Shown: positions 1 to 9,203, counted from the first letter of the whole stretch. The stretch is 63,864 nt of DNA, filler included, from Perkinsus chesapeaki ATCC PRA-425 (GCA_013115145.1; 13 parts of 13 records of this genome joined end to end with filler, not necessarily neighbours in it), one strand, 5' to 3'. Notes: generated from the sequence alone by a model not told the origin. Program-made: numbers and translations.

Positions 1-384
1 CTTGGTGTGGATTTTAATAATTTGTTGGGTTTAATTCCAACACTGCGGCTCAGGTACGATATCCCAGCGAATGAGGAAGTCACCTTGCGTTACTCTTGTA
101 TATCCTACAATCATCAGTCTACATGAACAACTCTATCAGTATAATGAGGACTACGAGTCTGTTAGCGTGTTACCATAACCATGAACGTACGTGGAATGTT
201 TCACTGATAACACAACTGCTGGTCTTCAATGTCGTCTGATAAGTCAAGATATTAGTGGCTCAATTAATTTATTTAGTCAACATCATAGTTTAGTTCATCA
301 CTCTCCGGTTCTGAAGCGGCGGCTCATCTTTCAACCATCACTATTCTTCCTTTCTCCATCAATGAATAGTTGGGTCGCTGCCTC

Positions 385-3132
385 TCACGCAGCCTCTTTT
401 TTAAGAGTACCTACCAGGGACTTGCTTTTTTCATCATTCGTGTCACCCAAAATGTAGCCAACCTCTTCAAACCCTTCGGCTTCTGCGTTTCCTCCCCCAT
501 CCGACTTGGGCTGGTCTTCTTCCTGGACCATCAGTTCCGTAATCGGGGCTTCTTCCTGGACCATCATTTCCCTGAGCGGGTCTTCTTCCTGGACCATCAT
601 TTCCCTGAGCGGATCTTCTTCCTGGACCATCATTTCCCTAAGCGGGTCTTCTTCCTGGACCATCATTTCCCTAAGCGGGTCTTCTTCCTGGACCATCATT
701 TCCCTGAGCGGGTCTTCTTCCTGGACCATAATTTCCCTTAGCGGGTCTTCTCGACGTTGAGCTCCCGTTGGCTGTGTCAAAATGGACCGTGGTCGAGCAT
801 TGACTATTCTCGCTGCCTCTGGAAGGACCGCGGTCGTCGGCATCTGCAGAAAGGCTACTAGCCCAAGGTTCCTGCTATTATGCTCTTCATCTACTTCGCG
901 CGCTGTGGATTTATCATACCTGCGACACTCCATTTTCCTACAATGTTTGCTCAGGACCAGGGTCCCGGGTTCACTCACCGAGGACGGCCCGCTGGAGTAC
1001 CTCCCGGGATAGTGAAGTCCTTCCAATGGTATCCAGTGAGCGCGTTTTCAAGGAGGTAGACGCCAATAAGGTGTTTGCATACCGAGGTTCTGCCTCGTGG
1101 ACAATTGCATTCATAGCAAGGAGTCTTTCGTTCAACCACAATTATGTTGGTCATGAGGAGTTGGAATTCCTCCCACGAAGCCCAGGCTGACGCGTTTTCG
1201 CTCTCGTACTTCATCTCGAAGCCTTGCATTATCCGCTCTAACTCGCCACTCCCGCTCCGGCACGCTTTAACCAACCGGTAACTCGGTATATAATACCTCG
1301 ACTTCTTATCGTTCGTCCAGATATTAGAAGCACTAAGTGTTCTCGTCCACTTCCCACCTTCTCTGACAAACTTCATATCTATTTTACCCTCCTCGGTCTC
1401 GGTTTTCAAGTTTGCTTCCGCCCGACGGCTGTAGTTGAAGCACAGTTCCATTAGCTGTACTGTTAGAGCTGCGATGGATGTCCCCTTTTCGATGTCTCCT
1501 GCCGTACAGAGTAATGCTCTCGGACTACTTTGGTTTTTCAACCTACCCTCCTTCAACGCACGATTCGTAGCTTCGCATGCATTATTCGATCTTGCTATAT
1601 AATTTGGTACCTGTGAGAATGATGTATGTTTCGAGTACCTTGTGAAATCCCGCAGAACCATGCGCTCACCTGAACATCAATCATAACCAGTAAACACATT
1701 GAATGTTCTACCTCGTCAGGCACCCCTTGAGCCCATAGGCACTTCTTCTGAATCCAATTGCCTCTGAAATATGTGATTAGCTCCTTATGGTGTTTTTCCC
1801 ATCTGCTTGTCATTAGCTCGCAAGCGATGCCAAAATGGCGTTCGCTCGAGCAATTCTGCAGAAATGCAACTGCCACACGGAATCGATCCTTCTCTTTTTT
1901 CGCCCACGTGGCCTCCACGGTATTAGAAGCTTTAATATACTTGTTCAGGGCTTTGTTAACGTTGTCTCTTAAATGTACGTGACAGTGAAACCGTAGGTTT
2001 CTCGGGACCGTGCCTGTCACGGAGGGGGTGGGTCGTTCCAGCCTATAGTTTTCGTTCATGGAATCAGGCATGAAAGGCCCGTGTACCTGAATACAACGAT
2101 TTGAATCAATTGAGTCAATTAACGTACGGCTTCGAAACCATTACTAAATGCGCCTGCACAATCAGCAATCAAGATGAATGGATGGTGTGGAATATCCAGC
2201 TTCGCACACCATTCTTTTATAGCTCGCATACCTGCCTCTATATGAATGCCGTCCTCCCTACTACTGTAGCCTATAGCGAGTAATTGGAAACTTCCTCTAA
2301 TTGAGTGAGTTCCAAGTAAAAGGGTGGGGATACCCACCCAGGATAAACCGTGGGTGTAGTCTCCCACCAGCACATTCGAAGTCGCATGATTCTTCAGTAA
2401 AGATACCGAACTGAAATACGCGTAATATTCCCCGTTCGGATCTAAGGACGAAGCGAGACAGAAAGCTTGAGAGTCATCGGTGAGAGGTATGCCATTTTCT
2501 GGACATGGAAGGCTCTCTACGTAGTTTTGTAGCTCAATAAAGGACTTCCCCAGGCCCTTATCTTCGAGTACTTTGGAACGCACGGTGTAACGGCGGTTAT
2601 ATACTTGCCTCCGTACCGCATCAGAAGGTGGGAGAAGCTTCTGGCGATCAAGTTTATACACCGTCTTTCGCGCAGGAAGCTTGTCTCTTGCGTCTGCGTC
2701 AATAATATTCCTCGCAGCAGGGGTCAGTCGAGGAGCCTTCGCGCGGAAAGTAGCTATCCGCTCATGCGCTGCGTGCTCAGCCGGAGCTTCGAGAAAGTAC
2801 TCGTTATTGCCGTGAATAATATGAAGAGTCCATGGGCAGCGTTGCCAGCCGACTCTATCCCCGTACGGACACCGATAAACATCAACTTTTTCGTTTCCCG
2901 CACGTATCTTTCGATCTTTTTTACAGAGAGTTTCCGGACATACGCCAGACAGTACCGTACCAGCTTCCAGAGCAGTGTCGAAGGTATCATAGGGACCGCG
3001 CTGCACTCTGTGTTCCCTACGTCGTCGCGGGAGAGGGCCTAATTGTGGGAAGGGTCTGGAAGGAGTCGGAAGTGGGCCGGTAGTTAAATCCAATGATATC
3101 GGGGCCAGAAATGATCGAGTATTAGAGGTCAT
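385..3132 (-). mobile_element. Mutator-like (MULE) DDE transposase gene, 4 exons, about 854 aa
   Basis: GT-AG introns at 2087-2127, 1611-1711 and 938-978 join four ORFs in frame. Motifs: WRKY/GCM-like finger (YRCPY..CPW..HAAH), VGDYTH (D1), IADCAGAFSN (D2), HCHVH (CxxH), SNNACEATN (E), SWIM finger (CNC..CKH), GRPR, acidic tail. Confidence 0.88.
511..750. repeat. 33-bp coding tandem repeat, about 7 copies (QEEDPLREMMV)n in the transposase tail
   Basis: Unit gggtcttcttcctggaccatcatttccctgagc is repeated head to tail with no spacers. Confidence 0.95.
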
Positions 3133-3336
3133 CAAAATGAATCCGATTCAACGAATACCTAATTCAATGACGGCTCACGGACCGGTTCCCATACTTGTTG
3201 AACCCAACAGGCACTGGCTTTAATCAGAAATGGGAGCTATTTAATTATTAGATGATCCCTATGAGCTATATTCGCAACTTGCAATCAAGAAGTCAGCCCT
3301 AGCCAGGCTACTTGTCATCTTCGGACTCTAAGTTAA

Positions 3337-4085
3337 TCACTTGATTACGTGTAGCGCCACTGTCTTTTCCTTCTCTCGAGGATGTGGCGGGAAACGGATC
3401 TTGCAGTGAGATCTTTTCCATAATCGCGTTGCTTGAGTTGATCGATAACTGAAAACAAGGCACTGGTAGTGTATCAGTGACATCGGAGATATTTTGAATT
3501 GTGCATATTCCTTATCCAAGACTATTCGAGATTTTAAATCTCAAATTTGATAAACTGCATATACTCACCTCGTACACTCCTTGTGGATTGTACTGCGGAT
3601 GAGCTTTTCTGATACTTACTCCATTGCCTTGAAGAATGTAGCAACTAGCCTCTTTGACCATAGGCGAGAAATGCTCACAGGCCTGCGAGTTAAGGACTCC
3701 TTAGCGATGCTGATTCAGCATGAGGACTTCACAAGCGTCCTCAGTGAGGAGTCCTCACTGAGGACGCAGCTTGTGAGGCCCTTGTCGCAGTGATGAATGC
3801 TTACCTTATTCCAAAAGTATGCTCGAATACGCATACCGCATCTATCCACAAACTCTGCCCAAAAGAATTTACCTGGCTTGGCACGGAATTGTCGGCTTGG
3901 TATACGCTTGGCAACGCGCACCATGATTGCCCAACTGGAGAGAAGGTCAATAACGTGAATGCATGTCCATTGTTGTTGTACTCCCGATTAATTCCCGGCT
4001 GCAAATCTTGGATCGGCGTGTAGAGCTGCGCTGCTTCGGGAAGCTTGGTACACTCAACCGTAGACCCAACACGATCCGCAAGCAA
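3337..4085 (-). CDS. RPA70-like OB-fold ssDNA-binding protein (spliced; ends uncertain)
   Basis: Removing introns 3935-3981 and 3683-3804 gives TPIQDLQPGINRDWAIMVRVAKRIPSRQFRAKPGKFFWAEFVDRCGMRIRAYFWNKACEHFSPMVKEASCYILQGNGVSIRKAHPQYNPQGVYE. This follows the RPA70 DBD-A pattern (PI.SL.P...W.I..RV..K..GK.F..EL.D..G.IRA..FN). Confidence 0.78.
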
Positions 4086-4323
4086 CCTAAAAGCAATAAC
4101 AATGAAAAAAGCTAAGTAATGGTGTCAGGGCAGTTTCCGTAGTAAACTTTACGAAGCGAGTCGCATGGACTCCGAGCTCGGAGCAGCTCAAAAGTTCAGG
4201 ATATAAGAGCTTGAGGTTCCCACCAGGCTTTGGCACGACTCCAGATAAAGCTGCAATGATTAGGAAAGTAAGCGGTACTAGTGAGCGATATAAATCGAAA
4301 AAGTGATTCTATGGGCGACCAAC

Positions 4324-4698
4324 TTACGTTGTCTTGCTCCCAAGGGGCGGTGGTCTGTTGTGCGGCATGTGCTGCTTTCTAACAGCTTCCACCACAAACC
4401 GCTTATCCACTGGGCTTTGGATTATACGAGCAGAGAAATCGCACGACCTCTCTCTTCTATAGTACGGGCATACATATCTGGCCACCTTGGATCCATCGGC
4501 AGTATAGTACGGCCCTCCCGGTGTTCGAAGGGGCCCAACAATATTCTCTAGTGCGGACCTGGCCATTGCCTCGCTTTCATACCGATCTGGGGTGCTCTCG
4601 AAGGGTGAGTATGTCCCATTACCGCGCAGGGCTTCGTCCGACATGTGACCAAGTGCAGAAATAAGATAAGCTGAGGAAGCCAATGCTGACAACGTCAA
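4324..4698 (-). CDS. WRKY/FLYWCH/GCM-like C2H2 Zn-finger ORF (probably one exon of a larger gene)
   Basis: YVCPYYRRERSCDFSARIIQ...QHMPH has the same YxCPY..C..HxxH layout as the N-terminal finger of the neighbouring transposase. Confidence 0.55.
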   Translation of the reverse strand: MTLSALASSAYLISALGHMSDEALRGNGTYSPFESTPDRYESEAMARSALENIVGPLRTPGGPYYTADGSKVARYVCPYYRRERSCDFSARIIQSPVDKRFVVEAVRKQHMPHNRPPPLGSKTT

Positions 4699-5408
4699 CC
4701 TGAATTAGAATTAATGATTAATTCTATATTGTGGTCCATAAGATCAGCCAGTATCTGCTCCCTCGCGGGATGCGAAGCTGGCATGTTCCCTTGAGATGTC
4801 TGCATAGCCATTAGTATGGAAAGTATGTAGGTATGAAAACTGTATGAAGCCGTATGAGTTTATCGTGAGCGAACGCAAAGCAGTTTCCAATGTGTTGTGT
4901 GACAGATGCATTCACTTCCGGTGGACTCTCTGATCAAATGCTCCGGACTAGAATTAATTTCCTTACATCTTGGCTCATCATATATGCCAATGACTCTAGA
5001 AAATCTTCTCTCCTCTAACTTTACAAGTTCAGTCACGAGGCCGACGACGGAGGAGCGGTCTGTGGCCTTCACCGACCTGATGAAGCGGATTCACGGGGAT
5101 ACTGTACAGAGCGGAATAGAGAGGTTAGTCGACAAGACTGGACATGCTCATGTGAAATCCCGACTCGATCAACTGATGCACGAGTAATTTTTCGACAGGA
5201 GTACTCGCTACTACTTACTTTCGTGATCTTCAGCTGTGGTCTACTGCTGTTCCCTTGAGGCTCTTGTGTTTGCGAGCCCGCTACCTGATACAAAACGTCG
5301 TGAATGTACGTCAACCCTTTACGAATACACTGCATCTCACATACAACATGAGATTTGTTTAGTTACTGCAGCCTAATCTATTGGATAAATAGATTAGTAG
5401 ATCAGATG

Positions 5409-7134
5409 CTATGGATTAGGCTCATACGAGAATCTCACTTGCAAATCCTCCTCTGTTTGTTTGGGAACATTAGCGTGCTCGTCGGAGATGTTATTCGACT
5501 TGATGGTAATGAATCTCGGGAGGGAGACAACCTCATCTTCTTCGTCGAAGTATTCAAGAGGATATCGCCAGGTTATGGGCTCACCGGGATAAATATGACG
5601 CTTAGCCTTCACGCATACTCCGGCTTGTAGGCCATGCAACTGTGTGTTAGGCTCCGCCGAGTGATTTACCAAGTACCATATATCCCCACTCCCGATTGGA
5701 TCCTCTAGACTGAACGTCGACCGGTTGTAGTAAGCCCACAGACGATTGCCGCGCTCGTCAATCAACCAGACCATACTATCCACAGGGTGCCCTTCAGCGA
5801 GCAGTCCATCGACTTGATCACTTCCATCGTTCCTCGCCGAATGTCTGATTACTCGGCAGAACAGTATGCAATCCCCCGGCTCGAAGCAACGGCTTGCAAT
5901 GAGTACCCGGCCGCACACAGCGTGAATTGCGACACGGAGACCCATAGCTTTAAGAAACAATCGATGAGTACAATCCAGTGGGCTAGGCGGTAGGTCCATA
6001 ACAACCTGTCGTGTACGGGTGTTGAATCTATGTGATAACTGGCCAGTTGGACCACGTGATGCAATTTTTATATCGGTGCGTAAGAGTTTGTCGTCGAAGG
6101 ACGAAGAGGGACCACGAAGCTCCGACCTCATAACAAGCTTCAATGAAGCACACGGTGTCATCCATATATCCTTATATTTATGCTCGAAGTAGGTACAGAC
6201 GCCAGTAGCACCGCTCGTCACAGCTAAACAGAAGCTCGAGTGAGGCCACCACCTTCCCCACAATGAGCCGTCGGCTTCATACAAATTTCCTCTATCACAC
6301 ATCCGTAGCTTACGAGGCTTTTTAGTGTAGGTGCCGGATTGGCAAGCGGCACTACGGGATGCCCACATTACTAATCTAGCCGGGCACTTGGGGAAGCGCG
6401 TCGATATGAGGTCATGGGCATGCAGTCCTTGGTCTATCATGGGGAGGTCAAGCCCTTCAGCATCGCGAGGAATCATATCCCGGGAAAGGTCACCATCGGT
6501 AGTATCACGAGGAATCATATCCCGGGAAAGGTCACCATCGGTAGTATCACGAGGAATCATATCCCGGGAAAGGTCACCATNNNNNNNNNNNNNNNNNNNN
6601 NNNNNNNNNNNNNNNNNNNNNNNNNNNNNNNNNNNNNNNNNNNNNNNNNNNNNNNNNNNNNNNNNNNNNNNNNNNNNNNNCGGTAGTATCACGAGGAATT
6701 ATATTCTGGGAAAGGTCACCATCGGTAGTATCGTCAGAGATCGTTTCCCAGGGGAGGACTACCTGCTCGTCAATAGCAGCATTGTTCATCTCTCGAGTAG
6801 AAGGTCGGCAAATACGAAGATTATCGGCTGCCCATTCCTCGGAATCCGGCCCTAGTCCGCGTGCTACCTTCCAAACTGCGGATGCGTCACCTGGACGAAG
6901 AAACAGGCCGAACGGAGAATGCAAGACCTGTCGGCTGTGAATCAGAGCCCGCCAACGCTGAGAGACTTCCATTATACGATACGGGCGAAGATTTCTCAAG
7001 ATTCGCAGCTCGATGGGATGAGGCGTAACCCCAGCGGACAGTAAGAGTGCTGCGAGGGACCGCAATTCGTTGCGTTTTGCCGCCCCGAGACGTGAGTTCT
7101 TGCGACCCGGTCTCTTGCCCGTGGATGAACTCAT
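5409..7134 (-). CDS. Intronless SET-domain protein spanning the N gap
   Basis: CGRVLIASRCFEPGDCIL (motif I), YLVNHSAEPN (NHS..PN) and IYPGEPITWRY (GE.IT..Y). ORFs 6574-7134 and 5409-6692 share the repeat on either side of the gap. Confidence 0.85.
6467..6733. repeat. 42-bp coding tandem repeat (DTTDGDLSRDMIPR)n
   Basis: Unit gaggaatcatatcccgggaaaggtcaccatcggtagtatcac; the copy number is hidden by the gap. Confidence 0.93.
6581..6680. other. Plain 100-N gap inside a 42-bp tandem repeat
   Basis: No TTAATTAATTAA linker. The same repeat unit flanks both sides, so the repeat was probably collapsed within one scaffold. Confidence 0.95.
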
Positions 7135-7966
7135 AACAGCACCAACCTAGGATGAGTGAAGAAAGTAAGACTGCATCCTGAATACCCTTCTCCCTCGGCC
7201 CAATACTGACTCTATGCTGTTTGGAAGCCTAGAAACTGCATGTGACCGCGCAACTGCGGTGACCGTTGTCACCGGCGGCCACTCGGTTCAGTGTTCGGTT
7301 CAATTCGGGTTTTCAGATGTATTTCGGTTCTCCTGGCTACCACTTGCTTGTGCAAATGAGAGATTGTTAGATGATGTTAGATGGCACCACGTATCTCATA
7401 GGATAATGCTGTCAGCAAAAAGTACAATAGGCATTTCAGTCAGGAAACGGAATAGCTAAAGAACCAAGTGTCTATAGGCAGTTGCGCCATCCGGAATGTG
7501 ATTTATATGTGATTCATATGTTTTATTTAATGTGACATATCGCCAACCACGCAACGGGTGGTTTCCACGAGATGATGATGTCAGTGCGAGCGTCCTCCAC
7601 TATCCACTACGAGAACTTCTTTAGCACCGATTGGGGGCCTCAATTTGAGGAAACTCGACGACAACTGTGGCCACATTGGACAACTGTGGCCACAATTTGC
7701 ACCGGATCGGTAGGAAAATCACCGCTTCAAGCTCGTACTACGCGCCTAGCATTGCCCGACAAACGTGAAGAGAAAATCAAGGTCATTTCTCTGTGATTTG
7801 ATGTGTTTACAGTTATTTCGTCACATGGCCACATAAAACGAAGCGTTTTATAAAAGAGAAGACTTTGGAACAGTTCCATAAACAACCCTAACAACATCGT
7901 GGCTCGCCTTGTACATTGGTGGAAATCGCCCTAGCTTTACCCCATTGCAGCCCTCGAGCCGGTCAA

Positions 7967-8066
7967 NNNNNNNNNNNNNNNNNNNNNNNNNNNNNNNNNN
8001 NNNNNNNNNNTTAATTAATTAANNNNNNNNNNNNNNNNNNNNNNNNNNNNNNNNNNNNNNNNNNNN
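7967..8066. other. Artificial scaffolding spacer (first of 12)
   Basis: N44-TTAATTAATTAA-N44 = 100 bp. The same spacer is at 12364-12463, 13820-13919, 16323-16422, 19012-19111, 23942-24041, 25196-25295, 50127-50226, 51421-51520, 53327-53426, 59803-59902 and 62554-62653. Confidence 0.98.
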
Positions 8067-9203
8067 TACTGGTGGTTGACACCTCAGCAAGTATCGAGAT
8101 CCATACTTGCTCCATCTCTGAATTGAAATCGGGAGCTACTGCGGTTGGAGAATGCGTCAGAGATCGCTTCTTGGCAACATTCCGAGGGGTTTTTATATGT
8201 GAAACGGAGCCGAACAGATCCTCGTCACTTGGGGCACGGGAAGTATCTTCTGGTGTGTTGTCTATCTTCTGATGCCGTACTTCCTCTTCTACATTCAGTA
8301 TTTGGTCTTCAAAAGATGACCATGATCCTATGCTCTCGGCTTTCTCAAAGGTGTCCATTAATATAGCATCCCCTTCGTCATCCTCCTTTTCGCTAGTACC
8401 CCCACCCTCGGCACTACATGAAGCTTCCCAAGAGGATTCCAGTGCCAGAACCTCTGCTAGGTCATCTTTTCCTACTTGGTCCTCGGAAAGCTCCTCTTCG
8501 AGACAACTGGCTGACGCCTGATTGTTACATAACCGCCCATACTCGAATCCTATCAGAGGCAGGGATGCGCAGTCTGGCGGGGCTAGAGTATAATCGGGGA
8601 ACTTGTTAGGATCTAGAGCACCACTCGCGATGAAGAGCTCAATGTCTCTGGGAGTAACCGACACCGGTGGCACCTTCATATTCAAAGCGAGCTGCCGCCG
8701 TCGGTTATAAGACGAGATAAGCCACGAAAGTCGACAGTCATACACCGTTGCAGCTAGTGCATTCATCGGCCCGAACGCCTTCGCCATCACACTGTGAATG
8801 GATTCCACACGCAATGTACCTGAGCACCAACTTCTTTGGGTCATTGTTCGAGACTCGATCTTCGAGTCATATCACCCCTTAAAGAGCGATACTCGCTCAA
8901 CTCTACTGGATCATTTTTGTAGTTTATACTGCCTATCTTTCGATAAGGAGGATCATCAAGGTTATCCTCGCAACACCTGTTCCTGAGGTGTATGATTTGC
9001 CTCTGTGCTACCTTCAGCAGCCGTTTTGTGATGATGGGGGTTGTAGCTTCTGCCTTGGAGTACGATATGGGTTGCCCAGTGCGTTGAGCATTCTCCAGAG
9101 CGACAGCATCAGCTTTTTGGTAGGAGGCGATAACGTGCTTAACGCGCTCGGCAGTCTCGACACCATCACCTATAACCCTCCGAATAAATCGACAGCGATC
9201 CAC
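8067..9203 (-). mobile_element. Probable C-terminal part of a DDE transposase-like gene
   Basis: Intron 8820-8875 joins two ORFs to give YRSLRGTLRVESIHSVMAKAF, which resembles the catalytic-Glu helix of MULE/Kolobok-type transposases. An acidic low-complexity tail follows. Confidence 0.45.

Follow-up and report, generated by a model that had tools for sequence, protein, structure and literature searches.

Canonical transposases of Mutator-like elements (MULEs)/MuDR combine a zinc finger of the WRKY-GCM1/FAR1 type, a DDE catalytic core, and a SWIM domain (Babu et al., 2006, PMC1702500; Dupeyron et al., 2019, PMC6446971). Further domains are on record in this superfamily. Table 1 of the second paper lists an OTU domain in MuDR-6_HM and, as does the passage in PMC12730594 that cites Kojima and Jurka (2014, Repbase Reports), SET-carrying MuDR and HarbingerS elements of Phytophthora. 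MULE transposases have also been domesticated, as in FAR1/FHY3 (PMC13306707), and RPA70-like genes are a known feature of Helitrons (review, PMC7385966). Here we describe contig C6 (7,966 bp) of the 41.7-Mb, 3,544-contig assembly of Perkinsus chesapeaki, on which a MULE transposase with intact catalytic motifs follows a zinc finger and an RPA70-like OB fold and adjoins a SET-domain gene. P. chesapeaki is a parasite of oyster and clam. Other non-canonical modules of MULEs are ULP1, which Kaonashi elements carry, and the VANC protein. All coordinates are those of C6, which occupies 1-7966 of the window, the 63,864-nucleotide stretch (filler included) that was presented.

Coding sequence of any length on C6 lies on the minus strand throughout, and its best protein matches are Perkinsus proteins. 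When each exon or open reading frame (ORF) was searched singly against Pfam, a SET domain was the sole match; Rfam and tRNA scans of the contig were empty. An earlier, sequence-only reading had named four features on one contig and one strand, a SET domain, a WRKY-like finger, an RPA70-like OB fold, and a MULE transposase, and all four are present on the minus strand. That reading had taken them for four genes in tandem within a single large element. Instead, the domains most likely belong to two co-oriented neighboring genes: an intronless SET gene (gene 1, 5409-7134) and a finger-OB-transposase gene (gene 2, 4644 to ~385, with ~10 GT-AG introns), whose parts the public protein model KAF4651813.1 joins. 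We lean toward a reading in which a host SET gene sits beside a multi-exon MULE transposase gene with an extra finger and an OB fold.

As judged from motifs and homologs, gene 2 is a coding-intact, multi-exon transposase gene of the Mutator (MULE) superfamily. Its transposase exons gave no direct Pfam match, all scores falling below thresholds, which sets them apart from canonical MULEs. In the families that its homologs match, gene 2 does resemble canonical MULEs. An exhaustive search with the exon at 2122-3135 returned 53 homologs at E ≤ 1e-3, of which 38 matched PF10551, ten the SWIM family PF04434, and six Transposase_mut (PF00872); a profile built from all 53 matched the Protein Data Bank (PDB) entry 6xg8, "Mutator family transposase," at E 8e-9. 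Transposase paralogs elsewhere in the genome matched PF10551 weakly.

The catalytic motifs could be placed exon by exon. In the large exon (2122-3135), the second finger of gene 2 (2761-2877) is followed by the initial half of the DDE core, in which the first two catalytic aspartates, D259 at 2359-2361 and D325 at 2161-2163, occupy near-invariant columns of the 53 homologs; an ATG at 3132 provides an alternative start. After a GT-AG intron of ~41 nt, the exon at 1724-2086, which is coding by comparison with the homologs P0006 and P0009, contains the MULE CxxH motif HCHVH (1961-1987). The catalytic-glutamate motif CEATN (E at 1572-1574) lies in the exon or exons at 978-1610, as does a SWIM-like CxCx8CxH motif, CYECNCPRGRTSVCKH, at 1071-1118, yet this exon gives no Pfam match. 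HCHVH and CEATN both align with P0009 and P0006. The last exon (385-936) encodes an acidic tail foreign to canonical MULE transposases, with 7.2 copies of an in-frame 33-bp repeat (11 aa, EDPLREMMVQE) at 513-751, and ends in a TGA at 385-387. With the catalytic D, D, and E and the CxxH in place and all transposase exons open, the earlier description of an apparently intact MULE transposase is borne out, and the DDE core and its catalytic residues are those of the Mutator/MULE superfamily. Gene 2 has in common with canonical MULEs a C..C...H..H finger at the N-terminus, predicted to fold like WRKY, and the DDE core with CxxH; the CxCxnCxH motif toward its C-terminus is SWIM-like.

The same exhaustive HMMER search returned KAF4651813.1 (P0005), a 902-aa P. 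chesapeaki protein encoded on C6 itself (99% identity). This model already joins finger, OB fold, finger, MULE core, SWIM motif, and tail. Mapped back onto C6, it occupies ten exons from 4644 to 415, separated by introns that are all GT...AG and mostly near consensus; examples are the donors GTAAGT (at the end of the finger exon), GTAAGC, and GTGAGT (both in the OB region) and polypyrimidine-AG acceptors. The spliced sequence used in our searches was this public model only. The model jumps from 2338 to 1747 and thereby loses half of the DDE core (D2 and CxxH). The skipped stretch is open and conserved in homologs: in P0006 (60% identity), P0007, and P0009, coding sequence runs through 2122-3135, a ~41-nt GT-AG intron (between GFEA and VHGPF), and then 2086-1724 and 1610-1167. 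The deposited annotation is probably wrong over 2338-1747, where the GenBank protein of this locus lacks the catalytic core. An AlphaFold2 (AF2) model of the whole 902-aa protein was unusable (pLDDT 41, with the OB region below 50).

The first exon of gene 2 (4327-4644; ATG at 4644) encodes a finger of the WRKY/FAR1 type, with its cysteine pair at 4435-4476 and HxxH at 4357-4374. The sequence-only reading had made this exon a finger ORF. The finger stands, since it aligns with those of paralogs and its predicted fold matches WRKY-like structures; the independent ORF most likely does not, as its TAA stop lies inside the GTAAGT donor. Pfam gave no match to 4327-4644. Alignment places finger 1 with the N-terminal finger of the transposase itself and the fingers of paralogs on contigs C119, C243, and C561; all have in common the pattern F.S...A...L...G...Y.C(7-9)C...H..H. 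In its AF2 model (pLDDT 72) a helix is followed by four strands, and the six best PDB matches found with Foldseek were WRKY18, RRS1-WRKY, and AFT2 (probability 0.87-0.99, E only ~0.1-0.2). The E-values of these model-based matches are weak and their ranking is consistent; the homolog profile reached only E 0.73 against WRKY18. An N-terminal finger of the WRKY-GCM1/FAR1 type is what MULE transposases are expected to have. Gene 2 differs in having two such fingers, with an RPA70-like OB fold also placed ahead of the usual one.

The OB fold is encoded by four short exons (4085-3984, 3933-3805, 3682-3569, and 3448-3311), which when spliced give an RPA70 DBD-A-like domain and a linker. Singly, these exons matched nothing in Pfam or among PDB sequences because they are too short. 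In the public model, residues 130-234 align with DBD-A of Ustilago RPA70 (PDB 4gnx_C, residues 5-108; E 1.2e-4). This alignment is contiguous over three exon junctions, and the introns of the OB region are therefore supported. An ESM Atlas model of residues 100-260 gave TM scores of 0.62-0.71 to RPA70 clusters, and resemblance to RPA70 DBD-A is thus seen in both sequence and predicted structure. The earlier claim of an RPA70-like gene is upheld as to the fold. As to an independent cargo gene it is not supported: the OB exons contain no ATG ahead of the fold, which could therefore not stand as a gene of its own if the finger exon were left off.

The resemblance to the host's own RPA70 exons is weak (E ~1e-3). 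Two RPA70-like host loci were seen in the genome, on C3059 (~96.2 kb) and C2915 (~74.0 kb), both with recognizable DBD-A and DBD-B exons; at C2915, stop codons interrupt the matched DBD-B stretch. The aromatic residues of human RPA70 that stack on single-stranded DNA (ssDNA) are F238 and F269. At the first of these positions the C6 fold has F (GKFFW), and opposite the second stands L or I (CYILQ), preceded at a distance of two residues by a Y; the OB fold of the P. olseni protein P0014 keeps both F residues. Word-based protein searches returned only the query itself for the P0005 OB region, and only P0014 and P0069 for that of P0014.

Those two P. olseni proteins bear on whether OB fold and transposase belong together. 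P0014 (682 aa) and P0069, from a second isolate, both run from PB1 through an OB fold, a weak Myb_Rap1 match, and a WRKY-type finger to a MULE transposase. Against DBD-A structures of RPA70 from human, yeast, and Ustilago, their OB folds gave matches at E 4e-9 to 2e-6. The P0014 fold is 28% identical to that of C6 (E 2e-11), and the transposase parts are collinear at ~25-26% identity. By HMMER score, the C6 fold is nearer to that of P0014 (~40 bits) than to RPA70 (23 bits), which would fit, and does not prove, a single old acquisition. Because it recurs in a P. olseni transposase of ~26% identity, the link between OB fold and transposase is probably real. We conclude that OB module and transposase belong together, fused or merely adjacent. 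Finger 1 and the OB fold are most likely either exons of the transposase gene or one small ORF directly ahead of it, not independent cargo genes.

Between these two arrangements, a single transcript is the one that the GenBank models of both species imply, and the pieces of gene 2 would then be spliced together as in KAF4651813.1. Several observations weigh against it. Perkinsus gene models often merge neighbors, as in P0064 (glycosyltransferase domains), P0058 (UCH), and P0069, and the single-gene structure of gene 2 may be an artefact of this kind. At the junction from OB fold to transposase the donor is weak (GTAGCC), an in-frame TAG comes right behind the last OB exon, and an ATG is available within the transposase exon, at 3132. 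In P0058, which at 60% identity is the nearest P. olseni homolog, what lies upstream is a UCH protease domain and no OB fold, and no OB exons were found in the ~2.3 kb upstream of the paralogs on C119 and C243.

The alternative that fares best builds on the same junction. In it, finger 1 and the OB fold form a separate small accessory gene (ATG 4644 to TAG 3308-3310, ~268 aa), a second ORF like mudrB, ahead of a transposase gene that begins at ATG 3132. It is favored by the stop right after the last OB exon, the weak donor, the ATG of the large exon, the common over-merging of neighbors in Perkinsus models, and the length of the intron in question (256 nt; of the nine introns in the model only one is longer, and most span 41-122 nt). 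It is opposed by the joining of OB fold and transposase in the models of two species and by the acceptor at 3055, which is a good polypyrimidine-AG. We consider a separate accessory gene a serious possibility, with the balance leaning against it.

P0058 (P. olseni KAF4707310.1) opens with a UCH deubiquitinase domain (PF00443, E 3e-20) that lies between copies of a duplicated VDDLMDVEDD motif, and it enters the transposase mid-finger; it represents either a MULE that carries a protease or a gene model that has been merged or truncated. Accessory enzymes do occur in MULEs that carry proteases, and the UCH domain upstream of this 60% homolog is comparable; C6 differs from them in having no protease, and the P0058 fusion is possibly a gene-model merge.

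Returning to the reading of gene 2 as a transposase gene with its own OB fold, a broader proposal is that an ssDNA-binding OB fold of the RPA70 DBD-A type was taken up by a Perkinsus MULE lineage, either in the transposase or in the directly preceding ORF, that two WRKY-type fingers flank it in C6, and that the association predates the split of transposases now ~26% identical. We hold this proposal to be close to an even call, falling just short of one. In the reading of C6 toward which we lean, the two fingers would recognize target DNA or the ends of the element, the OB fold would add binding to ssDNA or distorted DNA, such as the melted ends or the hairpins that form during MULE cut-and-paste, and the DDE core would cut and join. 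An OB fold truly within the transposase would suggest that MULE transposition passes through a step with single-stranded or melted DNA. It would also mean that a cut-and-paste Mutator had gained a replication-protein module of the kind carried by rolling-circle Helitrons. C6 is like the Helitrons in having a transposon-associated RPA70-type OB fold, presumably for ssDNA binding. Helitrons, however, are of the rolling-circle kind, have a Rep/helicase protein, and encode their RPA-like proteins in separate ORFs, whereas C6 has a single DBD-A-like OB fold in or before a cut-and-paste DDE transposase.

Full-text literature searches combining MULE or Mutator-like with RPA or OB-fold returned nothing relevant, and the eukaryote-wide MULE survey lists no RPA-like or OB domain and no Perkinsus element. 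WRKY-finger/SWIM MULEs, SET cargo in MuDR, and RPA70-like proteins in Helitrons are known; an OB-bearing, two-finger MULE transposase appears, by these searches, to be new. If correct, it would be the first reported RPA-like module in a cut-and-paste DDE transposon, a module so far deemed a Helitron hallmark. It would also add an alveolate case to the short list of MULEs with non-canonical modules (SET, OTU, ULP1 proteases, and VANC).

Gene 2 might instead be a domesticated, immobile host gene derived from a MULE, in the manner of FAR1/FHY3 or MUSTANG, in which fingers and OB fold serve a nucleic-acid-binding regulator. Like FAR1/FHY3, it has a finger, a core, and a SWIM-like motif in this order in a low-copy, intron-containing gene for which terminal inverted repeats (TIRs) were not found. 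At the DNA level, one copy was found in the assembly, in contrast to canonical MULEs; as this is a short-read assembly that may collapse near-identical copies, the count is weak evidence for domestication. The ~10 introns with all exons open, P. olseni homologs at 46-60% identity, and the extra non-transposase modules (OB fold and acidic repeat tail) also speak for such a gene. Unlike FAR1/FHY3, however, gene 2 keeps all of its catalytic residues (D, D, E, and CxxH), and its relatives are scattered and partly decayed. We found transposase paralogs at the protein level at no fewer than seven loci (at least seven; ~30% identity, some with stop codons), and the family includes many stop-bearing copies on short repeat-like contigs. 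The 60% P. olseni homolog lies in another upstream context (UCH), which speaks against conserved synteny. Domestication appears unlikely to us, and gene 2 would still encode a working transposase.

TIRs, a mark of canonical MULEs, were not found. In three different searches of the left end (1-500, together with C1976) against 4600-7966, the best local alignment did not exceed those of shuffled sequence, with the limit that the contig may end before the termini and that some MULE clades are TIR-less. A target-site duplication (8-11 bp in MULEs) was likewise not found on C6, both ends of which run into repeats.

Gene 1, the other of the two genes, encodes a product of at least 541 aa in which an N-terminal region is followed by 14-aa repeats, then by a middle region specific to the family, and finally by the SET domain at the C-terminus. 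The ORF runs from an ATG at 7134 to a TAG at 5409-5411 and contains an assembly gap (N, 6581-6680). That it is intronless, as the sequence-only reading had said, is confirmed. Translated, 5412-6578 matches PF00856 at E 5.6e-8, scoring 33.6 bits against a gathering cut-off of 22.4. The SET core (5562-5912) has the CGRVLIAS, NHSAEPN, and GEPITWRY motifs, and so both NHSxxPN and the C-terminal tyrosine. The product is probably a protein or histone lysine methyltransferase. A search of PDB sequences with the SET ORF was blank, and Atlas structure matches were to generic SET clusters only. An F-box-like match in the N-terminus was rejected as not significant (E 0.12).

The gap falls within a coding repeat. 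An in-frame tandem array of 42-bp units (14 aa, DGDLSRDMIPRDTT) extends over 6462-6745 and spans the gap: Tandem Repeats Finder reported it at 6462-6580, and the right side of the gap, 6681-6732, repeats 6497-6548 at 94% identity. On the minus strand, the upstream flank ends in ...GATACTACCG and the downstream flank opens with ATGGTGACC..., the exact junction of successive units. The codon split by the gap is GAT (Asp), the residue expected at that spot of DGDLSRDMIPRDTT. With the flanks in exact repeat register and this codon restored, the 100 N would therefore stand for a whole number of repeat units. That the ORF starting at ATG 7134 and the SET ORF ending at TAG 5409 form one frame, provided that the length missing is some multiple of 42 bp, is consistent with this and not proven. 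The ORF end at 7134 that the earlier reading had listed is thus real; it is the true start of the SET ORF and not a separate feature. The 14-aa tandem repeat of gene 1 is what broke the assembly here, and for annotation this means that the gap in C6 would hide only units of a coding minisatellite.

Gene 1 belongs, by sequence comparison, to a tiny family of intronless SET-domain proteins from Perkinsus only. In a word-based search of 5.8 billion proteins its only relatives were three, from P. olseni (44% identity), P. marinus (40%), and a Logan protein (38%). A single paralog is present in P. chesapeaki (C2871:8670-9731, minus strand, 43% identity), making two SET loci of this family in the genome. 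The five family members read as single uninterrupted ORFs, and in their alignment GRV..A, NHSxxPN, and GEPITWRY are invariant. Among solved structures, the family profile is closest to KMT5B/SUV420H1 (E 1.3e-5, C-terminal motifs only).

The paralog lies on a 108-kb contig and is flanked by ePHD-finger, Tim17-family, and WD40 ORFs. We compared ~65 MULE-family proteins with the 20 kb around it and found no MULE remnants. The ePHD-finger ORF (5814-8216, plus strand) converges on the paralog, and an N-gap lies directly upstream of the paralog's conserved part. A repeat that breaks assemblies may be a general feature of this family's proteins ahead of the SET region.

In its least probable form, the locus would be one autonomous MULE of ~6.7 kb with SET methyltransferase cargo, as in Phytophthora MuDR, whose SET protein would modify chromatin at or around the element. 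This was the earlier proposal of one large cargo-carrying element. Several features favor it. The SET stop is ~700 bp upstream of the first exon of gene 2; the two genes share a strand and are the only ones on C6, a short contig with a repeat family at either side. Few in number and intronless, the members of the SET family evolve fast (39-45% identity). Oomycete MuDR elements with SET, one or two ORFs, and usually no TIRs are on record in Table 1 of PMC6446971 ("SET for 14 members") and in the introduction of PMC12730594. This precedent, SET-carrying Phytophthora MuDR that are mostly TIR-less (the same table and PMC12730594), weighs against our assignment of gene 1 to the host, and a same-strand adjacency at 700 bp may not be chance. 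C6 is indeed like the Phytophthora elements in that SET adjoins a MULE transposase, the host is of the stramenopile-alveolate-Rhizaria (SAR) group, and TIRs are mostly absent.

The comparison with Phytophthora is made by description, not by sequence, and it has its limits. In Perkinsus the linkage is seen once, on C6, and the SET gene has a host-like paralog and relatives in Perkinsus only; the word-based search with the SET ORF gave Perkinsus proteins and no transposon-borne SET of oomycetes. No TIR was found, nor in the assembly a second DNA copy or another locus with the same four-gene order. No SET gene of this family occurs at the at least seven other P. chesapeaki MULE loci or in other Perkinsus MULE gene models, and the sole paralog sits in a normal host neighborhood. 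In the P. olseni isolate FOZ63, the nearest SET gene (FOZ63_011905, 17.7-kb contig) and the nearest transposase gene (FOZ63_005785, 1.8-kb contig) are on different contigs. Neither element bounds enclosing the SET gene nor another copy keeping the gene order could be identified. Adjacency is what ties SET to transposase, and SET cargo, an idea with precedent, is unproven and at present unsupported; we think it improbable. Gene 1 would instead be a host gene that by chance adjoins the transposase gene. If the SET gene were cargo after all, the locus would in its strongest version be an alveolate counterpart of the Phytophthora SET-MuDR.

The two ends of C6 run into two unrelated repeat families. 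At the left end (1-99), a 73-bp graph overlap with C1976 and C2101 is accompanied by a piece of a small-contig repeat tangle, and the assembly forks here: the first 73 bases of C6 are the last bases of C1976 and the start of the reverse complement of C2101, and C6 and C2101 diverge at base 74. Small contigs at this overlap (550-750 bp) share units 82-88% alike, suggesting a small repeat tangle or a heterozygous fork. At the right end (7863-7966), C6 reaches the border of a family of dispersed or tandem repeats; seven other copies are 82-98% identical, and the family is unrelated to the interior and the left end of C6. The last 104 bases open this family, whose copies recur every 580-690 bp in some contigs and look satellite-like. 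We considered whether the flanking repeats at the two ends are inverted copies of each other and rejected this, as there were no matches between them. Finally, both genes on C6 hold in-frame coding minisatellites, of 33 bp in 7.2 copies (513-751) and 42 bp in at least four (6462-6745), with units 94-98% identical.

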